A DNA stretch of 64,000 nt from Hypanus sabinus (Eukaryota). The translations under genes and the position numbers were made by a program. The stretch is taken from the NCBI RefSeq assembly GCF_030144855.1, contig NC_082714.1:144832001-144896000 (forward strand). Reading direction: 5' to 3'. The notes beneath the pieces were generated by a model, which saw only the letters and a list, made by a program, of their open reading frames with translations, had not been told where the DNA came from and did not search any database. Shown piece after piece: positions 6,238 through 64,000 of the stretch; positions within the stretch are counted from its first letter, which is position 1, and the number at the start of each line of letters is the position of its first letter.

Positions 6238-6293
6238 TACTTGTCTAAACTAAATTTCATCTGATGCCTTTCTGCCCCGTTTTCCAGATGATA

Positions 6294-6802
6294 GAATGCT
6301 GTGCCAAAAGTCTTAGGCACATTGGTGGATATAGTTAGGGTGCCTAAGCCTTTTCCACAGTACAGTATTAATCAACATGGAGAGGGAGAGAGATTGTAAA
6401 TCTGGTGGGAGCAAAGGCTGTTGGGATTTTTGAGGGTGTAGGACAGAGAAGGAGTTGCGAGGCAAGTGGCGTGGGTGCAGACACACTTAGCCCTGAGACA
6501 CTAGGCAAGCTCTTTTGATTTCAAACAATTGTTTTATTGATGATTACAGAATGTCTCCCTGGTGTTTCCCGTTCCCTTCCCTCTCCCTTCCCCTTTTCCA
6601 ACATGATTCCTTTCTCCTTACCCCCTTCCCACTCTTAGTCCAAAACAGAGACCTGTATCATAATCAGGTTTATTATCACTCACATAGGTCATGTTTTTTT
6701 TGTGGCAACAGTACAGTGTAATATATAAAATTACTAGAGTACTATGCAAAAGTATTAGGCTCCCCAACCAAACATTTATGCCCAACACCTTTGCACAGCA
6801 GT
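6294..6802 (-). mobile_element. Composite Tc1-type non-autonomous element (copy 1 of 4)
   Basis: Hairpin units built from CAGTACTGTGCAAAAGTCTTAGGCAC at both ends (6294-6365, 6737-6802); body is the reverse complement of 12260-12655. Confidence 0.8.
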
Positions 6803-7164
6803 TATGTCCCACTGTGTTCTTCTTCGCTATCTATAATGCTAATAATTTGGGTGTTGTCTGCAGATTTACCAATCATACCAAGTCATTGCAAATGAGCGGT
6901 GCAATTGTATTGATCAGTTAATAGTTGAGCTCTACACCTTCGTAGTGTTAAAACTTTCAGTTTAGAAATTGCTTCCAACTTTGAAAAGAATGTTTAGTTT
7001 TTGCACTGTCTGAAATCTTGCCTGTTGCTTGAGTTTAGAACTTCAGAATTTAACAACTTCTGCACACATTTCTCATAAATCACTCCACAAACTTCACATG
7101 CAAGGGATGAAAAATGACTATATTGTTTACTGATTAACACCTCTGTGAGAAGGATGGAGGGCTT

Positions 7165-7443
7165 AAAGCACAATCATTTTACAGTGCTAGCTGAGAAGAT
7201 CAGGGTTTGATACCCACGACTGTCTGTAAGGAGTTTGTACATTCTCCCCATAACCACAAGGGTTTCGTCCCAAATTCCAAAGATGTAGGCTAGGATTAGT
7301 AAATTGTGGGCATGCTATGTTGGCACTAGAAGTGTGGCAACACTTGTAGGCTTTCCAACACAGTCCTTGATGATTTTATTTGATACAAATGCCATGTTTC
7401 ACTACATGTTTTGATGCACATTAACAAATAAAGCAAATCTTTA
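7165..7443 (+). mobile_element. tRNA-derived V-SINE with Rex-type tail
   Basis: B-box-like GGTTTGATACC; V-domain GTAAGGAGTTTGTACATTCTCCCC; tail TTTCACTACATGTTTTGATGCACATTAACAAATAAAG. Confidence 0.75.
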
Positions 7444-8670: not shown

Positions 8671-8837
8671 CCTATTATTGAAGAGGAGTCATTTAATTCC
8701 AAATCTACACATTTAGATTTGCCTGTTTTTTTATGGCATCACAGCAGTACGCATGTATTGATAAGTATCCAATGGATATGCTCAATAACTGTGTTGCAAA
8801 TTAAGAGCACATTTATGGAGCAGTTATTGGAAATTGA

Positions 8838-9092
8838 GTGGTGGCATGGTAGTGTAGTGGTTAGCACAGCATTTTACAGCGCAGGCGACTGGTTCAATTC
8901 CTGCCACTGCCTCTAAGGAGTTTGTATTTCTCCCGTGACACCCTGCATTTCCTCGCAGTCCAAATACGTTAATAGGTCATTATAAATTGTCCTGTGATTA
9001 GGCTAGGATTAAATCAGTGGATTGTTGGGTGGCATGGCTTGAAGGTCCAGGAGAGCCTATTCCATATGGTATCTCAATAAATAAATAAACAA
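8838..9092 (+). mobile_element. V-SINE
   Basis: A-box GGTAGTGTAGTGGTTAG; B-box GGTTCAATTCC; V-domain; (AATA)n tail. Confidence 0.8.
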
Positions 9093-9400
9093 ACAATGAA
9101 GCCTACATGATTGTAATTCCAGAGTTTTGTTATACAGCATGTTGGGGTAAGAACACCAAAGTAGATAATGCATTCAGATCAATGAACAACATGGAACTAT
9201 TAAGGAAAGCCAAAAACCTTGGAGAAGTACTTTACTGTTTGGGTTTACTTGCAACTGTTAATTGACATTTATATTGTTATAGATAGCTATAATATTTATA
9301 TTATAGATGCTGCATGACTTGATCAAAGTTACCTAATAATTTGAAGGTTGTCTCTAGCTTTGCCCTATTATTGGTAACATATTAATTCAGAAAATGTGTA

Positions 9401-9588
9401 GCTTGGGTGGTTGATCATTGCACTGAGTTGTTCTCCAATCATGGCAATTTACTTGCAAACGTTCCATCGCCATACAAGGAGACATTGTCAGTGTGTCGCA
9501 ATAAACAGCACACTGACCATGTCTCCTTGCATGGTGACGAAGTGCTTGCATGTAAATTGCCAAGATCGGAGAACAGCTCAACCCAAGC
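9401..9588. repeat. Long palindrome, probable MITE
   Basis: 72-bp arms at 9424-9495 and 9509-9580 (12 mismatches), 13-nt loop, outer GCTTGGGT/ACCCAAGC pair. Confidence 0.8.
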
Positions 9589-9819
9589 ATAACATAACAA
9601 ATTTCTGATCTAATTTAAGTTACTGGCAGAATCTGACTGTTTGAATGATGGGTTTCCCAGAAATTCAGAAGAAAAATCAGGATCTGACCTAGTTAATCAT
9701 GTAGAAACATAGTTATCAGAAATTATGTAGATATCAATGACATGCTTTTATTAATATTTTAAGATTTTACATCTTTTATGTTTCTTACTTTGTTTTTACT
9801 TTTGCTCCTCCCTAATGGT

Positions 9820-10002
9820 AATAATGAGGAGAGAGCATGACCTTGGTGATGGGAGTCCTCACTGATGGATGCCGCCTTTTAGAGGCATCACATTTTTAAG
9901 ATGTTCGCTGTGCTGGAGAGGTTAGTGCCAGTGATGTTGCTGGGTGAGTTTGAAACCCTTTGCAGCTTTCTCCAATCCTGTGCAATGGTCCCTCCATACC
10001 GG
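9820..10002 (-). mobile_element. Rex1/Babar LINE fragment
   Basis: ORF 9888-10133 contains YGGTIAQDWRKLQRVSNSPSNITGTNLSS, the Rex C-terminal motif. Confidence 0.7.
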
Positions 10003-10125
10003 ATTCCTCCGCTTCCAAGTAGAATTTGCCTTTGTGTCTGTGTATTGTTAATAAGTTGGGAAGGGATTATTGACCAAAATAGAATCAAAAAGCCATACAA
10101 TTGTGAACCTGAGATTGGAATCTTG

Positions 10126-10316
10126 AACAACACAAAATGCTGGAGAAACTCAGTAGGTCAGGCAGTGTTTATGGACGAAAATAAACGGAGATTCTGGCTT
10201 CTGTTCCCTTCCTTTCCAGTCCTGATGGAAGGTGTCAGCCTGAAAGGTAGACTGTTTATTTCCCTCTTGAGATGCCACCTGACCTGCTGAGTACCTCCAG
10301 CATTTTGTGTGTGTTA
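10126..10316. mobile_element. Penelope-derived inverted-repeat element
   Basis: ACACAAAATGCTGGAGAAACTCAGTAGGTCAGG ... CCTGACCTGCTGAGTACCTCCAGCATTTTGTGT arms; degenerate hammerhead core near 10227-10264. Confidence 0.75.
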
Positions 10317-10880
10317 GTTATAGAATCATCTAGTGCAAAATCAGGCTCCTAAGACTGTTCTGTCCATTATCCATTTGCACTAACCATACACTTAATTCCA
10401 CTTTATCCTCCTGACATTTGCATCAGCCCCCCCCCCAGATTCTACCACTCCTATGCATTCAGGTCAAGTCTAAGAGATGTATTATCCAATGAGATTGAGA
10501 GTAAACCGGAGCACTGGCAGCCACAGTGGGAATGTACAAGCTCTATACAGACAATCCCAGAGATCAGAATTATACATGGATCTTTGGAGTAGTGAGACAG
10601 CATCTCTGTCAATTAATCGAATTGTCAATTAAATGGAACAACAGTGCTTTTCTTTTCCTTTCAATGCAATATGAAATGTTAGCTGCTCCTCTCTCCGTAG
10701 ATGCTGGCTGACTTGCTTGTATATTTCTAGCTTAGTTCATACTTCCAGAGATTGTAATATATTGCTCTTGAATTGCTTTCTCTGATGCTTTTAATTATGT
10801 TTATGGAATATATTGCTGACTACAGACAAATGCAGAGAGGTTGAATTTTGTTGCCTTGTTCAGATCTGGAGAGTTCAGTG

Positions 10881-10943
10881 GGCTCCATAGCTCAGGGGTT
10901 AGAGCACTGGTTAGGTGTCATGAGTTCAAATAAGTTCAAATCT
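10881..10943 (+). pseudogene. tRNA-Thr(UGU)-derived pseudogene lacking the anticodon loop
   Basis: GGCTCCATAGCTCAGGGGTTAGAGCACTGGT matches the 5' 31 nt of vertebrate tRNA-Thr-TGT (recalled); followed by TAGGTGTCATGAGTTCAAAT (variable loop/T arm); about 9-10 nt including the anticodon is absent and the 3' acceptor strand is lost. Confidence 0.75.
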
Positions 10944-10984
10944 GCAGAAGTTCTGCTTTAGATGAGCATCAGTAGGATATTGTA

Positions 10985-11484
10985 ATGGACAGTGTAGTGC
11001 TTAGCACAATGCTTTACAGCACAAGCAATGCTATATTGCAGCTAGAAGCATAACAATACTTGTGTGCTGCCCCCCAGCTCATCTTTGAACTGCGTTGGTC
11101 ATTGATGCAAACAGTGCATTTCACTCTGTGTTTCACTGTTTCGAAGTACTGTACATGTGACAAATAAAGCTAACCTCAAGAAGGTGGCATCCCTCATTAA
11201 GGAGATGTATTATCCCTCTTCACATTGAGGAGTGAGTGGGTAGAGGAGCCTGAAAGTGCACACTCAACGTTTTAGGAATAGCTGCCTTCCTTCTGCAATA
11301 AGATTACTGAACTGTCCATGGATCCGTGGTCAATGACCCACAATTCCTCTTATGCTCTGTTTATTTCTATTATCTTCATTATAAACTTTTAGTAATTGTT
11401 TATATATTGTGCTGAACTGCTGCTGCAAAGCAACAACTTTAATGACATATGTCAGTGATATTAAATCTGATTCAGTTTCTGATT
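10985..11484 (+). mobile_element. Internally deleted V-SINE (to ~11175) abutting a Rex1/Babar 3' fragment
   Basis: SINE head and tail as at 7165-7443; then CTCAAGAAGGTGGCATCC... to a TGATATTAAATCTGATTC tail. Confidence 0.6.
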
Positions 11485-11559
11485 TAAAGTGATCTGAGTG
11501 ACTCTAGTCAATGCAGATGGAGTTTGTTTTTAAAATTCCAAGGCATATGATTTATTGAT

Positions 11560-12033
11560 GATTGGTGTGGACTGTGGTTAATATTGGTCTCCTTCTGTGT
11601 TTTCTTTCTTGTTGCTGATTGGCCGATGGGTGATATATTACTCTTTTTGGGGACTAGGGAGGGATTGCAGATTTGAGATCTGATGTACTTGTTGGAGTTT
11701 TGCTGTGTGACCGATCTGTTAGAGTGTCGGGTGTGAGAGAGGTCGGGGGTTTGATGTTATTGTCTGTTCTTTTTTAGGAGGGGCTTGGGGGTTAGGGGTT
11801 TGATGTTTTACCTGCTATGTCGGGTGAGTGATTTGTTAGTTTTTTGCAAGGGAGGGGCTGGGTGTTTGGGGTTTGTGAGTTATACTTTTTTCGTGCGGGG
11901 AGGGGAAGGATTAATATCTTATCTTTCAATAAATCTCATGGTTTTTGTGTATTCTATGGCTATCTGGAGAAGACAGATCTCAGAGATGTATTCTGCATAC
12001 ATTCCTTGATAATAAAATGAACCTTTGAATCTT
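11560..12033 (+). mobile_element. Non-autonomous element with G/T-rich body and Rex-type tail
   Basis: Ends GATAATAAAATGAACCTTTGAATCTTT; architecture like 62348-63135. Confidence 0.5.
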
Positions 12034-12186
12034 TTTATACCTTTGATTTTCAGCATTGCAAAGGGTGAACGGAGCTCAAGAATCAGAAAACTGTGATAGA
12101 TGTTGTCTTTCTTCTTTGTCACGATTGTCAATGGCATATACATGTTAAACATGGGGAGTGCAACAGGAAGTAACATGGGGAGGGTA

Positions 12187-12665
12187 CAGTACTGTGCAAA
12201 AAGTCTTACGCACAAATATATACAGAAACTAAGGTGCCTAAGACTTTTACACAGTACTGTCTTAATTTTATGTATTGCATTATACTGCTGCAAAAAAAAA
12301 GTCATGATCTATGTGAGTAATGATAAATCTTATTCTAATATGGATCTCTTTTGTGAACAGAGAGTGGAAAGGGGGCAGGAAGAGGGGACTAATGGTTGGG
12401 AAAAGGAGAAGGAAAGGGAGTGGGAAGAACTTGTGAGACATTCTGTAATGATCAATAAACCAATTGCTTGTAATGATATTTCCTTGCCTGGTGTCTCAGG
12501 GCTGGCTATATCTGCATCTGTGCCACACCACCTCCCTGGCACTCCTTCTCTGCCAACTGTCCCATACCCCTTCTGTGGGGCTCCACCCTTGTGATTCCCA
12601 ACATTCTTTGCTCCTGCCAGATTTACCAACTTGCTCTCCACTCCACGTTGACAAATACAGTACTG
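12187..12665 (+). mobile_element. Composite Tc1-type non-autonomous element (copy 2; right hairpin collapsed)
   Basis: TA|CAGTACTGTGCAAAAAGTCTTACGCAC...GTGCCTAAGACTTTTACACAGTACTG hairpin at 12187-12259; right end reduced to TA-CAGTACTG-TA. Confidence 0.85.
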
Positions 12666-12843
12666 TAGGTTTATGAGAGAAAGAAATGTTAAAGGAATTA
12701 AGAACAGGTAACCATGCTTAAAGTAGCATTTGCTTATACTCCTAATATGTTAAATATAGTTTATAAGCTGTAAGTGAACCTGTGAATATTTACACAAATG
12801 TAAGTACAACTGGATAGTGCAGTTTGTCCATTTTACTGTGAAT

Positions 12844-13135
12844 GGGGCAGCACAATAGTGTAGTGGTTTGCGTGAAGCTTTAGAGTACAAGCAACCTAGG
12901 TTTAATTCCCACCGCAGTCTGCGAGGAGTTTGTACGTTCTCCCCATGACTACATGGGTTTCCTCCAGGAGCTCCATTTTCCTTCCACATTCCAAAGATGT
13001 ACTGGTTGGTTGGTTAATTGGTCATTGTAAATTGTCCTGTTATTATGCTAGGGTTAAATTGGGGGTTGCTGGGCAACGTGGCTCAACGGGTCGGAAGGGC
13101 CTATATTGCGCTGTGTCTCGATAAAATAAAATAAC
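12844..13135 (+). mobile_element. V-SINE, near full length
   Basis: GGGGCAGCACAATAGTGTAGTGG head; GAGTTTGTACGTTCTCCCCATGACTACATGGGTTTCCTCC V-domain; (AAATA)n tail. Confidence 0.85.
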
Positions 13136-13509
13136 AAAACAAAATATCTGTACTGTACTGTATCTGTACTGGGAAGAAAAAAGATAATTGTCTACAGGAA
13201 GTACTCTGTTTCAGTAAATAGGTATATTGTGTGATTATTTGTTTTGTTGATATCAGCATGTGTTTGAGTATTAACTCCTTGTGTAACCCATGAACACTAG
13301 CTCACTACTTTTTTTATTTCCATGCTTTGCATCATCTATTTAATTTAACTACTTAAAAAATATATAGTTACTCTGTAATTCACAGTTTTTTTTCTCTATT
13401 ATTATGTATTGCATTGAACTGCTGCTGCAAAGTTAACTAATTTCACGACAAATGCCGGTGATATTAAACCTGATTTTGATTTTAATGAATCATACCATAT
13501 CATAACCAC

Positions 13510-13636
13510 AAGATGCAGCAAATGCTGGAAATCTGGAGGAGCACGTACAAAGTGCAGGAGGAACTCAGCAGGTCAGGCAGTATCTATGAAGAGGAATAAA
13601 CAGTCGACACTTCAGGCTGAGAATCTTCGTCAGGGC
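13510..13636 (-). mobile_element. Penelope-end short element
   Basis: GCAAATGCTGGAAATCTGG...GGAGGAACTCAGCAGGTCAGGCAG...CAGTCGACACTTCAGG...TTCGTCAGG. Confidence 0.7.
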
Positions 13637-14780
13637 AAGTGTTCTGAGATTCTCGAAGATTACCACTAGTGGTCAGTAGAATCTGGGGACAACATGGCAG
13701 TTTTTCATAATGGGAAATTGCAGTGGTTGTATACATTTGAAAGAGGTTCATTTATCCTTGGATTGTTTATGTTTTAGCAGCAAAGAATCTTATGATTGAC
13801 TGAAGGTGAACAATTAGCTTGTGCCTTTTCTTTGCTCCAACACAGCAAACAAAGCTTCCTTTTTTCTCAGAGCTTGCTTGCCAGTATACCTTGTAACAGT
13901 AGAATAACTCCAGTTTTTAAACTGACAATTCCTTTAATGTCTAAAATTACAAACAACACTGAAGAGAAAACAGAGGACCATTGAGACGCAGACAAAGACA
14001 CAAAAAATCTGAATAACGAAAGAATGCATTTCACCTGCTGTTTCATCACAGAATAGATGAATAGGCACTTTACACAGGAACAAGACAATTAGGCAAGCAA
14101 AAATTAAATGCAGAGTCTGAACAGCCCCGAATTTCCAGTTAAGAGGGCAGAGATGCAGCAAATTATCGTGTTTAATGCTACAAACCAGGGTTAAATTTCT
14201 CAACAATATGCTTGTACAACATAGAAGAAAGGCTTTCAGTGAGATCTGTAAACCTGTACAAATCGTGTACAATTCCTGCTTGTTAAAAATGTAAAATCAA
14301 TATTGATTAAGATCGGTATTGGATGATAGTGTATCAGTAACCCATTTTAGTCCATGCCAGATTTCATTTTTTAAGCCAACTTCTGTCTTGACATGTACAC
14401 CAATATAATCTGTTCAGTAATGCAGATGTTCATTGAGTCATCGTATGCACTGATTTAAGGTGGGCCCTGAACTCACTCTTGAAAATTTGCTTGGAATGTG
14501 AGAACCAGGTGCAGATTTTTCGAAGGCTTAAAAAAATCCAGCTGTATTCGGATATCTTGGTGTCATTTAGCAATCTTGTTGGTTTCCTTCCCTGCCCTTG
14601 AAATGACTGCAAAAAGTACTCCCCAAGACCAGTCCTAACTAGGATAATTCTGTAATTTTTTTCGCTCTTCGGGAGAGAAGTGCTAATTTATCCAAATAAC
14701 CCGGATATTTGGCTCTATTGATGTATCATGTAACCCTGAGGTAATACTGAAGCTCTATAAAATAATGGTTAGCTCGCAAT

Positions 14781-18622: not shown

Positions 18623-19345
18623 TGAATTAAATTGAATTGACTTTATTTCTTATATGCTTTATATACATGAAGAGTAAAAATCTTTATGTTACATCTCCAT
18701 TCAAATGTGCAATTATAGTAATTTATTATAAATATTATGTACAACAGGATAGTCAATATAACATAGAAATACGGTTGTTTTAGCATGAATTAAGCAATCT
18801 GATGGCCTGGTGGAAGAAGATGTCACGGAGTCTGTTGGTCCTGGCTCTTATGCTGCTGTACCGTTTCCCGGATGGTAGCAGCTCGAACAGTTCGTGGTTA
18901 GGGTGACTCGGGTCCCCAGTGATCCTTCGGGTCATTTTTACACACCTGTCTTTATAAATGTCCTGAATAGTAGAAAGTTCACATCTACAGATGCGCTGGG
19001 CTGTCCACACCACTCTCTTCTGAGTCCTGCGATTGAGAGAAGTACAGTTCCCATACCAGGCAGTGATGCAGCCGGTTAGGATGCTCTCAATTGTGCTCCT
19101 GTAGAAAGTTCTTAGAATTTGGGGGGGAGGGGGGTGTACCAATCTTCTTCAACTGTCTGAGGTGAAAGAGGCGCTGTTATGCCTTTTTCACCACACAGCA
19201 GTATGCACAGACCACGTGAGACCCTCGGTGATGTTTATGCCAAGGAACTTAAAGCTGTTCACGCTCTCAACCCCAGATCCATTGACGTCTACAGGGGCTA
19301 GGCAGTCTCCATTCCTCCTGTAATCCACAACCAGCTTCTTTGTCT
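18623..19345 (-). mobile_element. Rex1/Babar LINE 3' portion
   Basis: ORFs 18780-19142 (FYRSTIESILTGCITAWYGNC...LLPSGKRY...FFHQAIRLLN) and 19188-19403 (KTKKLVVDYR, FKFLGINI). Confidence 0.9.
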
Positions 19346-21408: not shown

Positions 21409-24085
21409 TGTAACCTTCTCACTGGGGCTCGTATGCAAACCTGGCTCGATAGCGAACTCAGCTAACAGCCACGTGACTCAGCGGTGAGGAGGCCACCTTT
21501 CATAAACAATATTTGTCTAGTCAGTGTGATTTGGAGTTCAACCAGACAGGAACATCGAGATTTTCCAGTTAAAGAAACCTTGATTTGAGCAAATGCTGTG
21601 TAAATACTGTCCATACACAATTGTCGTTCAAGTCAAGTCAAGTCAACTTTTATTGTCATTTCTACCATAACTGCTGGTACAGTGCATAGTGAAAATGAGA
21701 CAACGTTTTTCAGGACCATGGTGTTACATGACACAGTACAAAAACTAGACTGAGCTACGTAATAAAAAAAACACAGAGAAAGCTATACTAGACTACAGAC
21801 CTACACTGGACTGCATAAAGTGCACAAAAACAGTGCAGGCATTACAATAAATAATAAACAGGACAGTAGGGCAAGGTGTCAGTCCAGGCTTCAGGTATTG
21901 AGGAGTCTGATAGCTTGGGGGAAGAAACTGTTACATAGTCTGGTCGTGAGAGCCCGAATGCTTCGGAGCCTTTTACCAGGCGGCAGGAGGGAGAAGAGAT
22001 TGTATGAGGGGTGCATGGGGTCCTTCATAATTCTGTTTCCTTTGCGGATGCAGCGTGTAGTGTAAATGTCCGTGATGGCGGGAAGAGAGACCCCGATGAT
22101 CTTCTCAGCTGACCTCACTATCCGCTGTAGGGTCTTGTGATCTGAGATGGTGCAATTTCCGAACCAGGCAGTGATGCAGCTGCTCAGGATGCTCTCAGTA
22201 CAACCCCTGTAGAATGTGATGAGGATGGGGGGGTGGGAGATGGACTTTCCTCAGCCTTCACAAAAAGTAGAGACGCTGCTGGGCTTTCTTTGCTATGGAG
22301 CTGGTGTTGAGGGACCAGATGAGATTCTCTGTCAGGTGAGCACCGAGAAATTTGGTGCTCTTTACGATCTTTACCAAGGAGCCGTCGATGTTCAGTGGGG
22401 AGTGGTCACTCCATACCCTCCTGAAGTCAACAGCCATTTCTTTTGTTTTGTTCACATTCAGAGACAGGTTTTTGGCTCTGCACCAGTCCATTAGCTGCTG
22501 CACCTCCTCTCTGTAAGCTGACTCGTCATTCTTGCTGATGAGACCCACCACGGTCATGTCATCGGCGAACTTGATGATGTGGTTCAAGCTGTGTGTTGCA
22601 GCACAGTCGTGGGTCAGCAGAGTGAACAGCAGTGGACTGAGAACACAACCCTGGGGAGCCCTCGTGCTCAGTGTGATGGTGTTGGAGATGCTGCTCCCAA
22701 TCTGGGCTGACTGAGATCTCCCAGTCAGGAAGTCTATTATCCAGTTGCAGAGGGAGGTGTTCAGGCCCAGTAGGCTCAGCTTTCCAATCAGTTTCTGAGG
22801 GATGATTGTGTTGAATGCTGAACTAAAGTCTATGAACAGCATCCAAACGTATATCTTTTTTGTCCAGGTGGGTTAGGGCCAGGTGGAGGGTAGTGGCAAT
22901 GGCGTCATCTGTTGAGCGGTTGGGACGGTACACAAACTGCAGGGGGTCCAGTGAGGGGGGCAGCAGGGTCTTGATATGCCTCATGACGAGCCTCTCGAAA
23001 CACTTCATGATGGTGGATGTAAGTGCAATGGGACAGAGTCATTTAGGCAGGACACTGAAGACTTCTTCGGCATGGGGACGATGGTGGCAGCCTTGAAGCA
23101 CGTTGGAATGGTGGCGCTGCTCAGGGAGATGTTGAAGATGTCAGTGAGAACATCTGCTAGCTGGTCTGCACATCCTCTGAGCACTCTACCAGGGATGTTG
23201 TCTGGTCCAGCAGCCTTCTGTGGGTTGACCCTGCACAGGGTTCTTCTCACATTGGCCACAGTGAGACACAGCACCTGGTCATTCGTAGGAGGGGTGGACT
23301 TCCTCGCCGCCACGTCATTTTCCACCTCAAACTGGGCGTAGAAGTTAATCTGCGCATTTGGGAGGGAGGCATCACCTGCATAGTCAGGTGATGTTGTCTT
23401 GTAATTGGTGATGTCACGGATGCCCTTCCACATGCACCACATGTTGCCGCTGTCCGTTACGAAATAACAGATTGTACACTGCATAAAATTATAAAGAGAG
23501 TGTATTTACTAATTTTAGCCTTATCAAACAGTTAATAGGAAAAAGAAAAATAAATAATAGTGTCCATTACAGTTAAACCTGTCCAATGTGCACATAAACA
23601 CTAGAGCTCATATTGGAGTATTCGGGGTTGTATCTCTTACTCACGCACTAGACCACCGATCTGCATGAGAATGCCGGCCATATTTTCAACTCTCATCGCA
23701 GACCATCTCGAGTAATCTCTCTCAGGACTGTTGCTCTTCCTCCTTGGAGACATTCACCTGCAGAAAAGCTCTTCTTGTCACGGGGACTCTCTTTTCAACA
23801 GCATTCTGCGGCATCTTCCCTTCTGTCCCGCTCTGCAGTTCCCGCCACAAGACCCTAAACCAGATTACTGTCCTTCAGAAAACTCATCCCCGCAGCTCTC
23901 CGGAACCTTCTCTCACATCCCACAACCTTGGTTGGCAGACTCAGATTCCTAAACTGGACAACATGAGTCCTTATCTTAGCGGAAGCCAAAACACACTTTC
24001 CAGCGTGGCACACCACTTTTACAGAAAACTGCTAATATAAACTATCTCACAACATCGTAGTGGAAATCTTAACCAAGGCATAACA
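21409..24085. mobile_element. Solo LTR-like element (~850 bp) interrupted by a Rex LINE
   Basis: TGTAAC...ATAACA ends; flanks TATA/TGTA (4-bp TSD, 1 mismatch); CpG-rich blocks at 21409-21628 and 23456-24085. Confidence 0.55.
21629..23455 (-). mobile_element. Rex1/Babar LINE, 1.8-kb 5'-truncated copy with reverse transcriptase pseudogene
   Basis: Frameshifted ORFs 23005-23484, 22823-23008, 22258-22842 and 21891-22118: [48 protein letters not shown]; (CTTGA)n tail. Confidence 0.95.
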
Positions 24086-25249: not shown

Positions 25250-25838
25250 AACACGTTGGAATCTCACAACCACCTATGCTCCATCTGCCATATAAAGCAG
25301 GATCACCCTGTGATCACGTGTTTTAATTCCTCTTCCCATTCTCAATCCAACATGTCAGTCCATGGCCTCCTCTACTATTTTGATGAAGCTACAGTCAGGT
25401 TGGAGGAGCAACACCATATAGCCTTATGCCACCCACCTGATGGCATGAACATCAGTTTCTTGAACTTCTGGTAATGTCCTCTAACCCCTTCCCCCTTCTG
25501 TTTTCCTCACCTTATCTCCTTGCTGCCCATCACTTCTCACTGGTGCTGCTCCCCCTTTTCTTTCTTCCATGGCCTTCTGTCCTCTCCCATCAGATTCCCC
25601 TTCTCCAGCCCTGTATCTCTCTCACCAATCAACTCCCCAGCTCTTTCCTCCACCTTTTTCCCCTCCCAGTTTCACCTATCATCCTGTGTTTCTTCCTCCC
25701 CTCCTCCCACCTTCTAACTCAGACCCCTCATCTTTTTTTCTCCAGTCCTGATAAAAGGTCTCAGCCAGAAAAAAAAACTGTACTGTTTTTCTAGATGCTG
25801 CCTGGAGTGCCAAGTTCCTCCAGCACTTTGTGTGTGAT
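25250..25838 (+). mobile_element. Penelope-like element 3' part with GIY-YIG C-terminus
   Basis: ORF 25208-25474 HLCSICH..DHPVITCFNSSSHSQSNMSVHGLLYYFDEATVRLEEQH..DGMNI; pyrimidine tract; CAGTCCTGATAAAAGG core; CCAGCACTTTGTGTGTG end. Confidence 0.85.
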
Positions 25839-26995: not shown

Positions 26996-29602
26996 GAAAC
27001 ATGGAAATTAGTACTTCTGCAATATTTGTCTGGATACAGCAATTAGATGATGACTAGATATCTGTTAATGATGTAGCAGAAGGAGAAATATTAACTAATA
27101 GTCATTAGGTTATATTTCCATCCCTGGTAACCAGATTCTTGAAGATCAAAAAACTGCAGCTGGAATTCTGGAATATAAACACACAAAAAAATACTGGGTA
27201 TACTTAGTAGATCAAGCAGCATCTGTGGAAGGAGAACGGAGTTGGCATTTCAGGTTGATCACTTTACATCAGATGTTGACATTTCATTAACTATGAAATG
27301 TTTAAAGGAGTGTTTGTCTTTTTCTTGGAGAAGCAGAGCAAGTGAAAGGTCACCAATCTGAAACCCTGTCTCTCTCCAGTTGTTACTTGGATTTACTTGA
27401 TCTAAGTATTTCCAATATTCTCTATTTTTACTTAGGCTCATGAAAGTTCAGATAGTTGAAACTCTATGAAGCCTCAGGTTTTAACATTAAGTTACTCAAC
27501 AGGGAAGGAATTAGAACTTTACTTTGGCAGGTCTGGATACATCAGATCCAAATTTCAGACCTCAGTTAAATGATCTTCGAACCTGAAACATTAAATATAT
27601 TTCGTTTTGCACAGATGTGGCCTACTACATGATTCCAGTGCTTCCTGCTTTTATTTCAGATTTACTGCATCTGCATTTGTTTGTTTTTCTTTGTTTTTAC
27701 TTCATGATAAAATTGCTTTCATCTTATGAAAATATCTGCCTTTCCATAATTTGGTGTATGCGTCTAGCAGTAATTAACAGTGTAATATGACCTTTTCTTT
27801 CTGTGGCTGAGTATTATATTTCAATACATAATGATGCTTGCTTGAGTATATGTCTAATGCTTGGCTGCTCACATGCTGGTGGGTGGTTTATTAATCTAAT
27901 CACTTATGATTTAATGGTATTATGTATCTAAGTCTCTGGCAAAGAAGAAAGGTTTTATCTGAAACCACAATTTGACTTCAGAATGAACAGTGGCATTTGA
28001 ATCTCAATCTAAATATCCCTTGATGTTCTTCTCAATTATAAAATTATTAACTTTTTGAGATGCTGTTAATTATTTCTGTGCAAACACTTTCTTCTGCTAA
28101 CCATACACCCAGTGTAAATTAAATAGTGGATGTACTGGAACTTTACAAAGGGTGTATAGTATTTGGCAAGGAACATTTGAAGACTAAATTCTTTCTTACA
28201 ACTGGGATTATAGTCTAAAAATTTAATGCCATCTCGTGGGTCAGAGGAAAGTATTTCAGTTGTGATTTTTAAACCAAATCTGTTTTGTTGGAAAATGTTG
28301 AATCCATTTTTCTTGCTGAATAAACAAGGATATAGTTGTCATTTATTCCTTCAAACAAATTCCTGCTTTTATAACTCTTTTCTTTTTGGCCAACATTACA
28401 ATAGGTATCTGGCTGATTTTATCTTGCAGATTTTGGCTTTCATCTTTATTCTTTCTGTCTTTAGGAAAAGTGCTCAGTATTATGGAAGTCTGTGGGAAAG
28501 TTGGCAGGGACCTTAACAGGCATATTTTATAGAGGCTACAATTGAAATGATTTCATACTGCGTCGGAAATGGATATGGAGGATGAAACCCTGCTGAGAGG
28601 TGTGTTCTGCTCTGAGTGATTATAGATGCAATCAGATCTATCAACATCCTATGAAATGTTATCATTTTGTTCCCTTATGAGTCATCCAGGAAGACTATAG
28701 ACAATGAACGCAGCTTACACTGATTGCTCAGAGTTATCAATCACTTTTATCTGCAGGACATATGTCAAGGCTGTTTTTGATGATGAATGATACTCTTGAC
28801 CTCTAAAGTGCCTTTTCTTATAATCCTATTGTGTATTTGCCTATTCTAGGTCATTTATCGGTTTGTTGCCTTGCCCTTAAGTGAAACCATTCTTTGACTC
28901 TTGAGGCCTTTTGCTTGTCCCCTTTCTTCTATCATGCTGCTGCACTCTAAGTGTACACTGTGCTGGATGTAGATTTATGTCTGGTTAAGTGCTCAGTTAT
29001 CTAACTTCTTTCCTTCCCCCCTCACCATCAATCCTTTGAGCAAATAAAACTCAGTAAGAGTGAAATGTGATCAATTCTGTATCAAAGACTTCCTTGGTGA
29101 AAGAAGTATCAAAGACCGTGGATGAAAAAAAAAACCTGAAAGGAAATTCTGTTCTGGATCTAGATGTCAGTTAAACAAATTATTGTCAATATAGAAGCTA
29201 GGAATCCACTTTAAAAGGTCCTATATGTTTGTTAACAGGCACATTAAGCCTAGTTTTAAATTTTAACTCAGTTTTACAGGCACGTGATTTGGCTTTGGAG
29301 ACATTGTTGATTTCAGATTTATGAATGGCCAGTTAACCCAGGAACACTACCCCGCTACTTTTTTGCACTACTCATTTAATTCACATTTTAATATATAGTA
29401 TATACTTCTGACTGTAATTTACAGTTTTTCTTATTATGTACAGTTAGTTACTGCTGCTGTACAACAAATTTCATGACACATTCCAGTGGTATTAAACCTG
29501 ATTCTGATTTTGATTGTCCTAGATGTGCATCTTTGATTACAAAATCAAAGCTGTTTAAACACATTTGTAAAACAATTATTATAAAGACAAAGCAAATCTT
29601 AA

Positions 29603-29822
29603 ATGCAAGAAATTCTGCAGATGCAGGAAATCCAAAGCAACACACACAAAATGCTGGAGGAACTCAGCAGGTCAGGCAGCATCCATGGAAATGAATAAAC
29701 AGTCGACATTTTGGCCCAAGAAGTCCTGAAGCAGGATCTCAGCTCAAAATATTAACTGTTCATTAACTTCCCTAAATTCTGCCTGATCCGCTGAGTTCCT
29801 CCAGCATGTTGTGAGTGTTGCT
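29603..29822. mobile_element. Penelope-derived inverted-repeat element
   Basis: AGCAACACACACAAAATGCTGGAGGAACTCAGC ... GCTGAGTTCCTCCAGCATGTTGTGAGTGTTGCT arms. Confidence 0.8.
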
Positions 29823-29990
29823 ATTATAATGGAAATTTTCGCTCTGCAAAACTTACATTAGAGCTGTGAGAACTGGAGTGGCTGCTCTTTCATAATCACA
29901 TAAACAAGACAATCTGAGGCATGAGAATTCTTTTTCTGTTAGGCTCACCCTGAAAAACTAAATTGTCAATCACTATTAGAAATAAGCCTT

Positions 29991-30099
29991 AAAAACACAA
30001 AATGCTGGCAGAACTCAGCAGGCCAGACAGCAACAATGGGAGGAGGAAGTGACAGCATTTTGGGCCGAAACCCTTCATCAGGAGTCTATTAGAAATAGT
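29991..30099 (-). mobile_element. Short Penelope-end insertion with 17-bp TSD
   Basis: TATTAGAAATAAGCCTT at 29974-29990 and 30100-30116; reverse strand carries CTGATGAAGGGTTTCGGCCCAAAA. Confidence 0.8.
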
Positions 30100-33375: not shown

Positions 33376-35186
33376 AAATAGTTGCAGGACATTCAGAGTA
33401 ACCTTACAGTAGGTCCTGATGGAGCTTCTCAGTCCAATACGTTGTCTCTTTATTCCCTTCCATAGATGCTGCCTGGCTTGTGAGTTCCTCCAGCAGTTTG
33501 TGTGCATGGAATTAGCTATCTGTTGGTAAGTTGAGGATTTCAGCTTTTGGCCACATAGTCATGGAGGTCCTGAACTTCCTCCCATTTGAGTGAATAAGTG
33601 TCAGCCATTCAATGCAGAATTGTTGGCAATACCACCAAAACATATGCTATTGACTGACTGGTCTGGGGAAACAATTATTTATTTAAATTTGATGCGCTGA
33701 ATTGGCAAAGCTTCTTGTGGTGCAAATAGTTAGACAATACCGTAATTAATAAAAATAATTATTACCTCTCGTGTTTGTTATGAATGCTTCCATCACTGGA
33801 TTAGGGGGAGGCACATCTGCAAACCAGATGTTTCTGAGCAGCTTGGCTCTCTAGGGAACTCAATGGACTGAGGCTGAGATGTTTGGCTAGTTCCAAGATC
33901 CTCTGTACTTTCTTTTTGATCAGTTGACTTGCCCGTGAAAGATACTGCAAAATCCAACATACAGTTAGGTGATAACAAGTCTGTCACTTTCTATGAAGTT
34001 AAGCAAAAGACTGAAAGCTGAAGTGGTAGATGTGAAGTGAATCATTCCTGATAATCCAACGGCTGGCATCACAACTACAATTATAGCGGGACTGGCCACT
34101 CGAGATGCAACTCCATGTGGGCAGTGTTTCACCAAGAAAAAGGAAGACACATATTTCCAAAAAAGGAGATGACATTTTGCAATTTAATTTCGGAGAAGAA
34201 ACACTAATAATGAGAAAAACATTCCCATCTTTGTTTTTATTGGCAATTTTTGCACTAAACAAGAACACATATAAAAAGGACCAGAATTAGTTCAGCACTC
34301 TGTCCTTAATTGCCAAAGATACTAATAAATAGATTAGATTTGACAGTAGTATTTCCCTTTTTTGTTAATAACTGGAAAATATCTTATTAAGTGCTCAATT
34401 TAAAGAGGGAAGAAACATTCCATTCTTTATTTTGATTGGCAAATATGTTAATTTGATCCCTACTGGTTGAAATGAGCTGGAGAAAGATGGCATGGGAATG
34501 GCTCATTGGTTGTGGGAAACAAAAGTCACTTTCTCATATAGCTGGGAATAGAAAGTGGTTTAGAGTTTAAAATTATGAATCAGGATAATGATTCTGATGG
34601 TGCAATGATGTAAAATAATGCCCTTTCCCCTCAGTAAATGAGACTTAAGCTGAAACATGAAAGAATGCGTAGAAGTTTCCTTTTAATGCTGCAGATAAAA
34701 AGGAGCTTCACTTGTAGTAGTGATTACATATGTGCTTACATCAAGAAATACAACCAATATCTTCATTTACAATCAGTTAATTAGTACTTTTAAAGGGGCT
34801 GGTAATTAACATCATACAATGAGAGCTGTCAAAAGAAAGCAGCATCCATCATCAAGGACATCCACAATGCCAGCCACGTTCTGTTCCCGCTGCTGTTCTT
34901 GGGAAGGAAGTTACAGACCCTCAGGTCCCACACTACCATTTTCAGGGCCGGTTATTAACCTTCAACCAACAAACTCCTGAACCAGACTAGATAACCTCAC
35001 TCACCTCAACATTTTGAAGATGAAACTAAAGAAATGTGTTTATCACTGATTCGGATTCAAAACAAAAAGCAAAACACTACCTTTCTACATATCCTCTTAC
35101 AAATAAATACAGAATGTTCAAATTGAACTAAAGCAATCTGAGTTTACAGGAAAAGAGAATGTTGTAAACAATAGAAATAAATTATT

Positions 35187-35668
35187 CGCTACTGTGTACA
35201 GGCCTTGGGTATACATGTACATAGCACTTTTGCACAGTGCTGTAATAATTTTATGTATTGCACTGTACTGCTGCCACAAAAAAACAAATTTCATGACCTA
35301 TGTGAGTGATGATACACCTGATATGGGTGTCTATTGTGGACTGAGAGTGGGAAGGGGACAGGGAGAGGGGAATCATGGTTGAGAAAAGGGGAAGGGAGAG
35401 GAGAAGGAATAGAAAGCACCAGAGAGACATTCTATAATGATAAATAAACCAAATGTTTGGAATCAAATAAGCTTGTCTGTTGTCTCAGGGGAAAGTGTCT
35501 GCATTTGTGCCAACCCCCGGCCCTGGTGCTCCAGCCCCCTGTCATTCCCAACATCCTTTGCTCCTGCCAGATTTATAAACTTGCTCTCTGTTCCATGTTA
35601 ATAAATAGAGTACTGTGCAAAAGTCTTAGGTCATATAATGTATTTCCCCAAGATCTGTGCTCCGTACT
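35187..35668 (+). mobile_element. Composite Tc1-type non-autonomous element (copy 3)
   Basis: Degraded left hairpin at 35187-35242; shared body; GAGTACTGTGCAAAAGTCTTAGG right unit. Confidence 0.8.
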
Positions 35669-38600
35669 TCACTCAAAACCAAACATGAAAGCCAACTCAG
35701 CAACCTGTAACTTGCTGCTGAACATAATCGGCTCATACTTTTCTGAATCCTGATTAGAGTGGAAGTGAAGACTACTCTTGATGCTTGGAGCAACATAAGA
35801 GATTCTGCAGATGCTGGGAATCCAGAGTAACACTCACAAAATATCAGTGGGACTCAGCAGATCAAGCAGCGTCTATGGAAAGAAATAAAGTGTTGATGCT
35901 TCACACCAAGACCCTTCATCAGGACTGGCTTACCATTTCAACAAGTTAAATTGAATACCATTGTATCGCTGTCAGTCAACCTTTCTGGCATTATTGCAAG
36001 TATGGAATCATATTTTAGCCATGAAATTGGTGGATATTTATCAAAAATTAATTATCTTTTTCTGTCTCCATTTATTCTCATTCTCTTTGACTCTTCAGGT
36101 CTGCTTTCATTCCTTATCCTTATGTGCCTTTCAGCATCCATATTGACATAGATTTCATCCACTGACTCAAAATTGCTTTCATATCTTGTATTTATACATT
36201 TCACCTTGATTTGCCAGATACATGGTTGCTCTGCTCACTTACTGAGATCCTAAATCTTCTGAAGAGGATGTGGCAGCATTCACATGTCATACAAAATATA
36301 ATCTAGCAAGTCAAATTAAATAACAAAAGACAGTGGTTTGTTGGGTGGGAGGGAATGTGAGGCAGACCAACCTTAGTTGTTAAATTTTCTCTCTTCTAAC
36401 TTCTGGGAGTATATCCAGGAGCTTGAAAGGATGAATGTCCAGAACAGGTTCTTCCCTGTTGCTATTGGACCTCTGAGCTAATTATCCGCTTCAAATACCC
36501 TTCTCAGCGGAGCTGTCATGTTCTTGGGCTCATAGTTCTATTCCAATTGGTTATTCTATCATTGTTACCTAAGCATTCTTATCACATTACTGTGGATCCC
36601 ACTGTTACCTTTGTATCACTCTGTTGCTTTGTGCTTGTGGATGTCTTCATTGTCGTATCTTTTTATCTAATACGTTTGCAGTTTACTCTGAGTTTCACAT
36701 GAGCAAAGAATTTCCTTGCAGTCTGCTATATAGGACAATAATCTAGTTTGAATTTGAGAGAGTAAAAGGCTATCAGAAAAGAATGAGGAAATTCCAGTGG
36801 TCGAGTGAAGAAGAATATTAGGAACAAAGGCCTATGTTTGGAGGAGGGTAGAAATCTCAAAGGGGTATATGGCAGGGAAGAGGGAAAGGTCATGGATTGA
36901 TTAGAACTTAAGGATGAGAATCTAAAAATTTTGTTTTTGCTGCTATCTTGACAGTTTTCTCCTATTCTGTCAGGCATGTCCTATTGAAAACCCAAACTAT
37001 CACATGGCACCTACCAACACAACATGAAGCTGAAGTAAATAAATTGAGAAAATTATGAAAAAATTGTCAGCTTCTTTGGAATTTGCTAAGAGTGCCTCCA
37101 TAAACATGATATAAATTTATCTCCACATTATATATTTCTTTCTATGAACAGATTTTAGTTTTCACTTATAGGTCAGTGCTCTGTCGTAGTTTCTCTGGTT
37201 GCCAGCATTTGTAGTCACAACACTAAATTGTCCTGGAGTTTGTGGGAATAATTCATTGGTGATTTGGGAAATTTGATTCTATAGCTTAACTTTGAAGGAC
37301 AAATTTGATATTGCTTTATAGTAATGACCAATAATGTTAGCTTGCTGAATAATGTAAACATTATTTTTTCTTAAGATGCTGCAGGGTTAGCTCTACATTT
37401 GTACATTACTGCTGAGAGGCTTACCCGTGGACCACATATATCAGGTAATTACCTAGCTGCAATTTCCTCATATTCATGGTTAGGAGGCAAGGCTTCCTAC
37501 CAGTAGTGCACACTAATTTTTTTGGTGAGAAAGCATTTTCAGATTGTGCATGAATGTTGACATTTATAGGCAAGTGTTTTGGTTTCTATACATAGAGGTT
37601 GAAAAGTTCGATGAAAATGACTTTGGCCCTGATTTGAATGCAAAATTATTTTGAGTTGAATCAATTTGTAAAAGTAAGTGAACTAAAATCAATGAAAGGA
37701 AAATATTTTTAAATTTATAGAGCTCTGCAGCCTGGTCTTCATTTACCGCTTACTGTTTTCAGGATTGCAATAAGGTTGGACACACAGAGGTTGACTTTTG
37801 TAGTCCACTGTTCATCCTTAGACATTGCTGCCTCAAGATATTCTTTTCTATATTTTCACAGGAGATCCTAAGTTTATATTCTCTTTTTGATCCTTAAAGG
37901 AAGCAAAGTCTATTTACAAGTGGGTGACATTTTTGACTTACTCTGACTTAGGCAGGAACTATGATCTAAATATCGACCAAGCCTTGGGATCAAGCACAAG
38001 ATATTTCAACAACAGATTCTGCAGATGCTGGAAATCCAGAACATCTGATGCAAAAGTCCTGAGAGACCACAACAGGACACATTGCACACCCAGATCTGCA
38101 GACCTGGAACAAACATTCATGGTGGTGGACATCCAACTCTTCTCTGCTTTGAATTTAGGTTGCATTTTAAAGCCCCATTGTTCCTAAAGTTTCTTTTTTG
38201 GTTTCTGTGAAATCCAAAATGCAAAATTGAAGGGGGCATTTATGAAGCAAAATAGTTCACATTTTGGAGATATGAAAATAATGTAAAAACTCAGAACCTG
38301 AATTAATATTTATCTTCTGCCTGAACTTGGAGGAGATCACTGTCCAGTTTGCATTTCAATTGTGGTATTTAGTGATAGTGGAAGGTGCTGATTAACCTTA
38401 AATGGTAGCTGCAGTGTTTGATTATAAGCAGGGATTATCTGCATTTGGTGGTTTACTGGCTAACTAGTTGGACCTGAAAGATCTTCTCTAAACCCAGCAC
38501 ATACCAGCCGGAGGAGAGTGTCAAACAATGATCCTCGTGCAGGAGAACAAAACTGCAGATAGCAGCACTCAGATATCCATGCTAAACTCTAGGGTGTATT

Positions 38601-40275: not shown

Positions 40276-42189
40276 TAATGTTAGATCTAGTTAATTGACC
40301 AGGACTGTTTGATCTTTAGTTTTACAATATAAGTATCAGGGAAGTTAGGCTTGTACATTTGAAGATATGAGTTATATACCATGTTTAATGTGAGAAAATA
40401 AAATTAAGATGCTTCGTGTGAGAAGATAATTCTTATTCCAAGATGTAGGTGTTGATGTTGAATGAGAACAAGGAATTTGTAACATATGGCTGTGGGAGTT
40501 CTGAAGAGTAACGTGATGAGAAAAGACTGTTGCTGATGGAAGAATTGGCCTTGGTGTTGACATATAGTATCATGCAACTTCAATAAGTATACCTTAGGAG
40601 TAAAAGAGTGGAAGACAACCATAGAGCAGTTCTAATTCTGAAGATGATTGGTGACAGGTGAGCAGATAGTAGGAAGTAGTATATAAAGTGATCTGGGAGG
40701 CAAGTGCATATTAACTTTGCTCTGGATGCTGAAGGTGCTGTTGGGAAAATTATATCATGGGAAAATCATGTATGAAAACATGAACAAGAGTTTCAACTGA
40801 AGTGGGATGGAGGAAGAGGAAGTTGTATACAAAATACTCCCTTCTGTCCCAATTCTCTTTACACAGTGGGATATCTAATATTTTAAAGTCTATTGATAGG
40901 TGCGAAGGTCATTATTTTAAAAACATATATCTCTTTCAATATTTTAAGTGCCTATAAAGTTACATGCTGGGGTTTATGTCCCCAAAATTGACTTCCTGTA
41001 ATTACTTCCATTTTAACTTAAAGCATTCTAATCAAGTACAATGTTAGGCTTCTCTTTGGAAATAACCAAAACCATATATGGTAAAACTATTCAATAATGT
41101 GTTCAGCCTGTTTTAGGTCTTCTGTGTTTTATTAACACTTCCCAATACTCCACATTTGTGCTGTAATAGAATGCATTTGTCATGGGATAATGGTTGCCAT
41201 ATCAAAATATTATTGTAAAGTTAGTTTCAATGCATCAAAAGTCCTCTAAATTAGCACTAACCATACTGTGAATCTGAACTATTCATTACATGAAGAGTTT
41301 GCTTTTCCAGGAGTTCATGTCCAATTATTGTAGTAAAATTTCTGTTTGATTTTATGCAATTTTCAATATGAGATTTGCTTCTGTAATTTGAGATTTGTTT
41401 TTCTTTTCTACAACTTTAGTATACATTAATGCATTTCAAACAGGAAGATCACTTTATTTTCATTTCTACATTTTTCTTTGCAAAAATTAGAGAGGGAAAG
41501 AACTATCAGCCAAAAATCCAGAAGAGATGGAGTTCAAAATCAACACAATGATACTCATTACTTCTGGAGAATGAATTTATATTGATCTATGGGATTGTAG
41601 AAGATGTTGATTAAATCCAGGTTATGCTTAACATTTTTAAATAAATTCCAGTACTTTCAGTGGAGAGCAGTTCTTCCAACATAGTTTGATATTTAAATGT
41701 CACATTGTTGAGATCCTTAGAAGAGATTTTAGCAGTCAACTGATAGTGATACAATAGGAGAATATTTAATAACATTCTGCTGTCTGTCATTAAAATATGT
41801 TAATTAATGTAAATTATGCTGTAGAAAGTGAAAAATTATTTGAGTGCATTGAATGCAAAAATATTGCCAAGAATATGTTTAGCTGTATTAAAAATGCTTG
41901 ATTAATCATCAGATTTAAGAATTGGAATATTGCTATAAAAACAACAATGGACAAAGTATTCTTATTCAGAACATCAGAAATGTTTATTGACTTAGCATTG
42001 GTTTATTAAATTTAAATCATGAGTGACTATCTCAGAAAAATTGCCTCAACTTTCTGCCTTTTTCTACATTACTTTTTGGCATAAATCATTGCCAATTATC
42101 TTGCAGATTGCTCATCCATTCCAAAATGGTTTTGGGTTTATCAAGATGTGAAATAAATGATGCAATATAACAATGCATAACATTATGAA

Positions 42190-42422
42190 ATGAGATTCTG
42201 CAGATGCTGGAAATCCAGAGCAACACATGCAAAACGCTGGAGGAATTCAGCAGGTCAGGCAGCACCTATGGAAATGAAGAAGAAGGGGATTCTTTGGGCC
42301 AAGACCCTTCGCCAGGACTGGAAAGGAAGGGGGTAAGACCCAAAACTTTGGCCTGGACCATCATCTGCTCATTCCTTTCCATAGATGCTGCCTGACTTGC
42401 TGAGCTCCTCCAGCATTTTGTA
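42190..42422. mobile_element. Penelope-derived inverted-repeat element
   Basis: AAAACGCTGGAGGAATTCAGCAGGTCAGGCAGC ... GCTGCCTGACTTGCTGAGCTCCTCCAGCATTTT. Confidence 0.8.
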
Positions 42423-42619
42423 TGAATTAACATCTTAGTTTTGATATGACCCCAATTAACTAGACTCCAAATGCTAATGGTATTACACTGTCTATGATGT
42501 AACTGGAAAGATCACAAAATAAACCTTGTGTAACAGAATTCGGATATTAACTTTTGATATTGTGGACATTTGGTTTCCATTTTATGTTTGTACTTAACCT
42601 AATGTTTAGGCTAGTGCTT

Positions 42620-44668: not shown

Positions 44669-44896
44669 ATTTCATTTTGTTTCATTTCATTTCATTTCAT
44701 TTCGCATTTCCCCCTCCCCCCCCCCACTACTTTCAAATCTCTTACTATCTTTCTTTTCAGTTAGTCCTGACGAAGGGTCTCGGCCCAAAACGTCGACAGT
44801 GCTTCTCCTTATAGATGCTGCCTGGCCTGGTGTGTTCCACCAGCATTTTGTGTGTGTTGTTTGAATTTCCAGCATCTGCAGATTTCCTCGTGTTTG
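44669..44896 (+). mobile_element. Young Penelope-end insertion with 14-bp TSD
   Basis: CTGA(T/A)CAAAAGTGA at 44655-44668 and 44897-44910; (TTCAT)n at the 5' junction; PLE end CCAGCATCTGCAGATTTCCTCGTGTTTG. Confidence 0.85.
44764..44797 (+). ncRNA. Minimal type I hammerhead ribozyme motif (G12>A, probably inactive)
   Basis: GUC-CUGACGA-A-GGG(UCUCGG)CCC-[A]AAA-CG-UC-GAC: core, stem II, short palindromic stem III and stem I. Confidence 0.7.
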
Positions 44897-46424: not shown

Positions 46425-46665
46425 GGCAGCACAACAATTTACAGTACCAACGGCCTGGGTTCAATTCCGTAAGGGATTTGTACATTCTCCCCATGACCGA
46501 ATGGGTTTCCTCTGGGTGTTCCAATCTCCTCCCACGTTCCAAAGATGTACCGATTGATAGGTTAATTGGTCATTGTAAATTGTCCTGTGATTAGGCTAGG
46601 GCTAAATTCAGGGTGACCTGGCTCAAAGGGCCTATTCTGTGATGGATCACCATAAAATAAATAAA
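46425..46665 (+). mobile_element. V-SINE inserted in a reverse Rex tail (46230-46800)
   Basis: CCTGGGTTCAATTCC; TTTGTACATTCTCCCCATGACC; (AAAT)n tail. Confidence 0.8.
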
Positions 46666-54204: not shown

Positions 54205-54423
54205 AATTGAATTAAATTGACTTTATTTCTTACATCCTTCACATACATGAGGAGTTAAAATCTTTACATTATGGCTTAATCTAAATGTGCAATGTTCAAT
54301 TTATAATAATTTGTAATAAATAGTATGTACAACAGGACAGTCAATATAACATAGAAATACAATTGTATCAGTGTATCATTCTGATGGCCTGGTGAAAGAA
54401 GCTGTTCTGGAGCCTGTTGTTCC
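54205..54423 (-). mobile_element. Rex1/Babar 3' tail
   Basis: Near-identical to 18623-18840. Confidence 0.8.
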
Positions 54424-54775: not shown

Positions 54776-54839
54776 TTACAAGAAATGCAACATTTCTGCA
54801 GATTGGTGATAACATCTCCTTCTTATTGACAATCAATTC

Positions 54840-63790: not shown

Positions 63791-64000
63791 GACTGAGGGG
63801 AAGTGAGGAATGACAGGCAGCTGAAGGCAAGCGAGTGTGGGTGGGGAGGGGAAATAGAGTTGTGAGACGGGGTAGATGAGTGAGAGGTGCAAGCAATCTG
63901 AAAAAAAGCAGGTGGATGGAAGCAGGTGCAGTGAGGGCAAAGGTAGAGGCAGCTGCAGGAGGCTGGTAAGTGGGGGCACTGGAACTGTGTACACCTTTCT

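Follow-up and report, generated by a model that had tools for sequence, protein, structure and literature searches.

The repeat, its copies and its surroundings

The stretch of DNA analysed here, hereafter ‘the window’, comprises 64,000 nt of the forward strand of the Hypanus sabinus genome (GCF_030144855.1, contig NC_082714.1, 144,832,001-144,896,000), and all positions given below are counted within it. Using self-BLAST and a four-way alignment, we see that it contains four copies of a single non-coding repeat of ~500 bp, with terminal units and bodies placed as follows:

6294-6802, minus strand: copy 1; right unit 6294-6365, body 6366-6737, left unit 6738-6802; flanked by TA at 6803-6804 and 6292-6293
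12187-12665, plus strand: copy 2; left unit 12187-12259, with 24/26 arm complementarity; LINE-tail part of the body about 12262-12341, remainder of the body to 12655, inner TA at 12656-12657; right unit collapsed to CAGTACTG, 12658-12665; target duplication TA at 12185-12186 and 12666-12667
35187-35669, plus strand: copy 3; left unit 35187-35242, its loop and inner arm partly lost; right unit 35607-35669, its last arm decayed; right flank CA
60292 to about 60814, plus strand: copy 4; left unit 60292-60359; 12-bp deletion within the LINE-tail part; right unit 60742 to about 60814, its last arm badly decayed and its end uncertain by a few bases

Four copies had already been recognised at these places in a sequence-only reading of the window, and the alignments agree with it to within one base other than at the right edge of copy 4: the end proposed there, 60793, only reaches the point where the last, decayed arm begins and has been refined accordingly. 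Every pair of copies is 70-74% identical over ~445-480 bp (self-BLAST, E 1e-60 to 1e-86), whilst pairwise K2P distances between the bodies lie at 0.25-0.32, equivalent to roughly 0.13-0.16 substitutions per site per copy since insertion. In the four-way alignment, homology ends at the edges of the terminal units and the flanking sequences are unrelated; in addition, when the flank pairs were joined across each copy, no shared flank or uninterrupted paralogue was found in the 64-kb window. A check for common flanks, of the kind that segmental duplication would leave behind, therefore shows all four copies to occupy independent sites. The whole module-cargo-module arrangement thus occurs at several independent sites, as represented by the four window copies and by thousands of contigs from public runs (see below). 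We see no sign of a host function.

Other repeats share the window with this family. A segment of ~190 bp (10126-10315) matches its own reverse complement at 67%, forming a fold-back repeat with partial copies at 29639-29830, 42188-42429, 13542-13634, 25741-25836, 35828-35928, 44763-44858, 33413-33504 and 29988-30083. A dispersed repeat at 12795-13146 has copies at 8797-9093, 46438-46661, 53179-53387 and 7204-7270 (64-82% identity), and another, at 54205-54423, recurs at 18625-18841 and 63254-63449. No hammerhead reaches the Rfam gathering score in the window.

Palindromic terminal units and their TA flanks

At seven of the eight ends, local alignment reveals a palindromic unit of 60-75 bp, composed of a 26-bp arm, a loop (the spacing from arm to inverted arm being 11-20 nt across the seven ends) and the same arm in inverted orientation; this upholds the earlier proposal that each end, where intact, is a unit of ~55-75 bp carrying an inverted pair of its own. 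The consensus for the arm, CAGTACTGTGCAAAAGTCTTAGGCAC, forms the outer tips of the copies, recurs in the consensus of the family's loose ends and, as a 26-bp sequence, is confined within the window to these copies. A 17-mer representing its core is matched ten times in the window at up to 3 mismatches, against an expectation of 0.17, with nine of the matches located inside the four copies and a single weak match at 20986. Folding calculations predict that the better-kept units form DNA hairpins (-16.7 to -18.6 kcal/mol, z -4.3 to -7.7); as no Rfam family attains its gathering score in the window, the units contain no known miRNA or ribozyme.

The terminal inverted repeats start with CAGT and end with ACTG, and the duplicated target site is TA (cleanly so in copy 2); both are features of Tc1/mariner elements. 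The IR/DR organisation, in which a TIR of ~200 bp holds an inner binding site directly repeating the outer one, is not seen: the inner arm lies 15-20 nt from the outer arm and is its inverted complement. We also considered whether each unit might have arisen as a hairpin at a transposon end, or by fold-back duplication of such an end, and rejected the idea: the two arms would then meet at their tips, but in these units the CAGT tips point outward at either side.

Contigs from four public runs allow the relative orientation of the two units to be established at the level of the family. Their alignments to copy 2 stop at 12229, because the loop and outer arm of this particular copy differ from those of the family. 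The family consensus before 12229 consists of the arm plus ATATATATAG, followed by the CTAAG of copy 2 and then the inverted arm, whilst after 12666 it consists of the arm plus CCTAGCTATATAT. As the left loop, ATATATATAG(CTAAG), and the right loop, CCTAGCTATATAT, are reverse-complementary, the two units are mirror images of each other, forming ends of ~67 bp; the four window copies taken alone show only a weak trend towards this arrangement. A mirror orientation would be expected only half the time if two units had inserted independently, but every time if they arose in a single event or were inherited from a parent with long palindromic TIRs.

The right end of copy 2 is a special case, reading AAA-TA-CAGTACTG-TA-GG, where TA-CAGTACTG-TA occupies 12656-12667 and only an 8-bp palindromic tip is left. 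In each of the four public runs, 309-475 contigs continue past 12666 with GCAAAAGTCTTAGGCAC CCTAGCTATATAT, i.e. with the missing right arm and loop. Contig joints leading back from 12666 to 12234 hold, between their two sides, a loop plus the remainder of an arm. Since CAGTACTG is its own reverse complement, the two tips of a unit are also direct repeats of each other; together with the contigs that run on, this indicates that the right unit of copy 2 was lost through deletion between two 8-bp tips. The loss is old, as a contig from one of the sampled organisms (organism A) crosses this junction with only three gaps. An interpretation of TA-CAGTACTG-TA as a transposase footprint was tried and set aside, the sequence being indistinguishable from the product of slippage between 8-bp palindromic tips and differing from the canonical TA-C(A/T)G-TA scar.

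Turning to the dinucleotides that border the units, all four copies have TA on the inner side of the right unit; on the inner side of the left unit, the dinucleotide is TA in copies 1 and 3, TC in copy 2 and TG in copy 4. At 12261-12262, where copy 2 has C and T, about nine tenths of the family depth (public-run contigs aligned on copy 2) reads A and G, such that the family sequence becomes ...CAGTACTG-TA-GTAATTTTATG, with an inner-left TA in the family majority. For the outer flanks, the suggestion that the ends are usually bordered by TA is sustained at both ends of copy 2, which are clean, and at both ends of copy 1 provided that one arm base has been lost; it is not sustained at the right end of copy 3, where the flank is CA, and the left end of copy 3 and right end of copy 4 are ambiguous. 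A clean outer TA is seen at only about half of the ends, the imperfection reflecting their decay. Each unit is bounded by TA both inside and outside.

Cargo, abundance and age

Over its first ~80 bp, the body matches the 3′ tail of a LINE that is also found free in the window (70-78% identity over 75-85 bp, E 1e-6 to 1e-13), in the following places:

about 11375-11498, plus strand: free LINE 3′ tail; its subtype is the one most similar to the cargo
13284-13486, plus strand: free LINE 3′ tail, 5′-truncated and ending in TGATTY repeats
29334-29514, plus strand: free LINE 3′ tail
55668-55803, plus strand: free LINE 3′ tail, ~320 bp downstream of a reverse transcriptase (RT)-derived remnant at 54799-55349

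The similarity is real, as had been claimed from free copies at ~11405-11484, 13400-13482 and 55730-55808; the tail at 29334-29514 is a fourth, missing from that list. We identify the repeat as a LINE 3′ tail from the position of its copy at 55668-55803, which lies downstream of a stretch (54799-55349) homologous to 22163-22704; the minus-strand ORF at 22261-22842 encodes a reverse transcriptase (RVT_1, E 5e-20). The free copies moreover have upstream sequence in common and all stop at TGATTY repeats, thus behaving as the constant 3′ end of a plus-strand retroposon. ORFs upstream of the tail at 55668-55803 gave no Pfam match from which to assign the LINE to a clade, for which Rex had been suggested.

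Further LINE sequences are scattered through the window. One on the plus strand (56047-58059), which closely precedes copy 4, is fragmented into three or more ORFs and retains matches to an endonuclease (Exo_endo_phos_2, E 2e-11) and to two pieces of RVT_1 (E 2e-15 and 1e-12). LINE RT remnants on the minus strand, at 22261-22842, 18783-19142 and 63464-63994, each have a C-terminal match to Pfam ALKBH8_N (PF09004), above the cut-off in the first and below it in the other two; this looks like a LINE-derived domain, not an alkB gene.

Within the element, the tail has the orientation in which it aligns to the free copies, and its TGATTY 3′ end is internal, ~85 bp inside the left unit. It is followed by ~310 bp of body found within the window only in this family, and then by the right unit. 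With the 3′ end of a LINE joined in this way to ~310 bp of other DNA, the cargo is a captured piece of the genome, spanning a LINE-end junction and unrelated to the modules at either side. The element thereby departs from the pattern of SINEs and other LINE-dependent retroposons, for which the tail serves as the 3′ end of the element and the 5′ end is variable. The free tail at 11375-11498 reads ...AAACTTT-TA-GTAATTG... with no unit present, and the same TAGTAAT follows the left unit in the element; the inner-left TA thus pre-existed in the tail—as expected had a unit inserted there—and this free tail represents, by paralogy, an ‘empty site’ of the left unit. As a separate observation, the LINE-tail part of the cargo contains GCACTGTACTG (35256-35270, with counterparts in the other copies), agreeing with the arm tip GCACAGTACTG at 10/11 positions; the free LINE tails read GCATTGAACTG or similar at this place. 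The resemblance may be due to chance, or may represent a third tip-like motif ~20 bp inside the left unit.

Across four coded organisms, 9,178-14,498 Logan contigs per run match copy 2 at 80% identity or more; these are contig pieces and not copies, and indicate that the family numbers at least thousands. The amplification claimed on the strength of four copies in 64 kb is in this way supported, both by the independent sites and by the contig counts. As depth in these data is per contig, the contrast in depth between hairpin and body carries no reading. To the left of copy 2, 12000-12057 corresponds to a high-copy repeat (summed contig depth 2,000-11,000 in all four runs), the next 115 bp being unique.

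A contig from organism A spans 12007-12324, leading from the unique left flank into the element (36 differences, 12 gaps, ~85-88% identity), and a second (12598-12850; 20 differences, ~92%) extends across the right junction; for organism F, a contig covering 12641-12850 shows 2 differences. Organism A therefore carries copy 2 at the same site, in flanks that have diverged by ~10%, and the copy was inserted before that divergence. No empty orthologous site was encountered, in that contigs from the four runs aligned on copy 2 never skip the element, and the one relative that covers the site has copy 2.

Origin of the element and relation to known systems

We consider this family to be, more likely than not, a non-autonomous cut-and-paste Tc1/mariner element (TA-targeting and CAGT-ended) that is built like a composite or ‘sandwich’ transposon. 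The complete, TA-bounded units, the captured cargo, the independence of the sites and the abundance of the family all speak for the composite arrangement that had been proposed from sequence alone; on the other side stand the lack of a solo unit in the window and a mirror-image symmetry that fits other origins too. Outside the four copies, no solo mini-unit was found in the 64 kb by mismatch searches with the arm, by an ungapped 18-of-26 scan or with an nhmmer profile of seven units, where the best match outside the copies had an E-value of 0.42. Within the 64 kb, the count of solo mini-elements against composites, put forward as a genome-wide check on the idea, thus stands at zero to four; solo units are rarer than composites in the window, making two independent nearby insertions less likely a priori.

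Nor was an autonomous element or transposase domain found among the 18 window ORFs of at least 110 aa that were scanned (all but three ORFs, which overlap the LINE at 56047-58059 in antisense); the matches obtained were to LINE endonuclease and RT. Exact searches with 19-20-mers from the TIR and a 21-mer from the body gave no matches in metagenome contigs and none in viral contigs. In prokaryote genomes there was a single exact match to a 19-mer of the arm, on a contig of Simplicispira psychrophila (L001; 2266-2284), consistent with chance given that ~4 such matches are expected for a 19-mer in 596 Gb.

In our model, a TIR-only palindromic mini-element of ~67 bp, capable of moving independently, would have inserted into a TA within a LINE 3′ tail, ~85 bp from the end of the tail. 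A second mini-element, in mirror image, would then have become established ~400 bp further downstream, through another (local) insertion or else through alternative transposition starting from the first. Because the units are mirror images and solo units are lacking, we hold a single-event origin for the second unit—for example, alternative transposition from one unit—to be as likely as a second independent insertion. A Tc1-like transposase, supplied in trans, would subsequently have used just the two outermost arms, carrying the entire ~500-bp segment (from one unit through the LINE tail and ~310 bp to the other unit) to fresh TA sites. Its copies would have risen in number to thousands or more ahead of the split among the sampled ray species, and the family is now dead and decaying; palindromic ends being unstable, units lose arms or collapse, e.g. 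at the right end of copy 2. It has been argued (PMC5224488) that some Tc1-family transposases act poorly on ends with too little DNA between them; should that argument hold here, the composite, with its ends ~500 bp apart, may have outgrown its own mini-element.

An unlikely, though by no means negligible, alternative is an ordinary non-autonomous element, whose parent had TIRs of ~67 bp with two inverted transposase-binding sites in each, and whose transposase gene was replaced by the LINE tail and neighbouring filler during abortive gap repair, the unit never having moved alone. Non-autonomous DNA elements usually arise through capture of filler during gap repair, and such a parent would account for two units that are exact mirror images at family level, as well as for the lack of a solo unit in the window. 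It would however leave to coincidence the TA found exactly at the inner tip of both units (a chance of roughly 0.07 squared), and the LINE-tail homology begins at that inner TA, just as it would at an insertion junction. Moreover, no Tc1/mariner end with an inverted inner site has been described, the repeats of IR/DR ends being direct (PMC5224488). We think it rather improbable that the arm-loop-arm unit is the obligatory end of a ray Tc1/mariner lineage, with two inverted transposase sites per end or an end that forms a hairpin; were this so, the synaptic complex would be unlike those of the simple-IR and IR/DR types, and a ‘composite’ appearance would be the normal look of the non-autonomous elements of this lineage.

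We give little credence to the idea that one mini-element plus cargo is the true unit, with the second hairpin stemming from an arrangement in tandem or in circular permutation, or from a single-step event (aberrant repair or alternative transposition) that duplicated the unit in mirror image. The symmetry of the ends would follow naturally, and alternative transposition does generate composite insertions that act as macrotransposons in maize (PMC9910405), but contigs with back-joints from 12666 to 12234 carry 27-31 letters on their short side, corresponding to the second arm only, without continuation into another body, meaning that tandem arrays are not the usual form; furthermore, a single body lies between two units in all four window copies. 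Lastly, a SINE-like retroposon moved via its LINE tail, or a set of segmental duplications, has next to no likelihood: a LINE 3′ tail is indeed present in the body, but both fail on anatomy, the 3′ end of the tail being internal and followed by ~310 bp and another unit (ends that LINE-mediated copying could not make), the boundaries of the copies coinciding with CAGT arm tips and TA, and the copies being ~28% diverged within unrelated flanks.

Composite mobilisation is textbook knowledge in bacteria; for eukaryotes, it has been demonstrated at a handful of hAT loci in maize and has been engineered for Sleeping Beauty. In Tn5 and Tn10, a small mobile element is present as two inverted copies, whose outer ends serve to mobilise the intervening DNA, and it is these inverted IS modules that the mirror ends of the ray element resemble. 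The IS modules encode transposase, whereas the ray modules are non-coding and would be reliant on an enzyme acting in trans.

For the unit itself, the closest likeness we draw is with MADE1, an Hsmar1-derived palindromic MITE of primates made up of two 37-bp IRs and 6 bp, which is similarly a TIR-only Tc1/mariner mini-element with a short spacer (~80 bp, TA target, hairpin-forming; PMC5224488). MADE1, however, has 37-bp arms, a 6-bp spacer and ~8000 solo copies, whereas the ray unit has 26-bp arms and a loop of ~15-20 nt, is unrelated in sequence, and is seen only in pairs around one cargo. The family would offer a natural test of whether TIR-only palindromes are poor substrates and the same ends ~500 bp apart good ones (compare PMC5224488). 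It is also of practical value for the annotation of batoid repeats and for transposon-vector thinking.

For the arrangement as a whole, the Sleeping Beauty sandwich (SA) vector has two complete elements placed head to head (PMC4229213, describing Zayed et al. 2004); there, as here, mirror-image elements of the Tc1 family flank a cargo, and the vector uses its outermost ends for cut-and-paste (PMC4229213). The SA vector is engineered, with inner ends mutated against cleavage, full IR/DR ends of ~230 bp and a cargo measured in kilobases; the ray family, in contrast, is natural, with simple 26-bp arms, inner tips that are apparently intact and thousands of copies. In the Ac/Ds macrotransposons of maize, the ends of two closely spaced elements cooperate in excising and reinserting the DNA that separates them, and an increase in copy number is possible (PMC9910405); these nevertheless belong to the hAT superfamily, produce 8-bp duplications, span 10-28 kb and are confined to few loci, as opposed to being dispersed at high copy number. 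A natural Tc1/mariner family of sandwich shape, present in thousands of copies, would show that the same design works at genome scale in a vertebrate.
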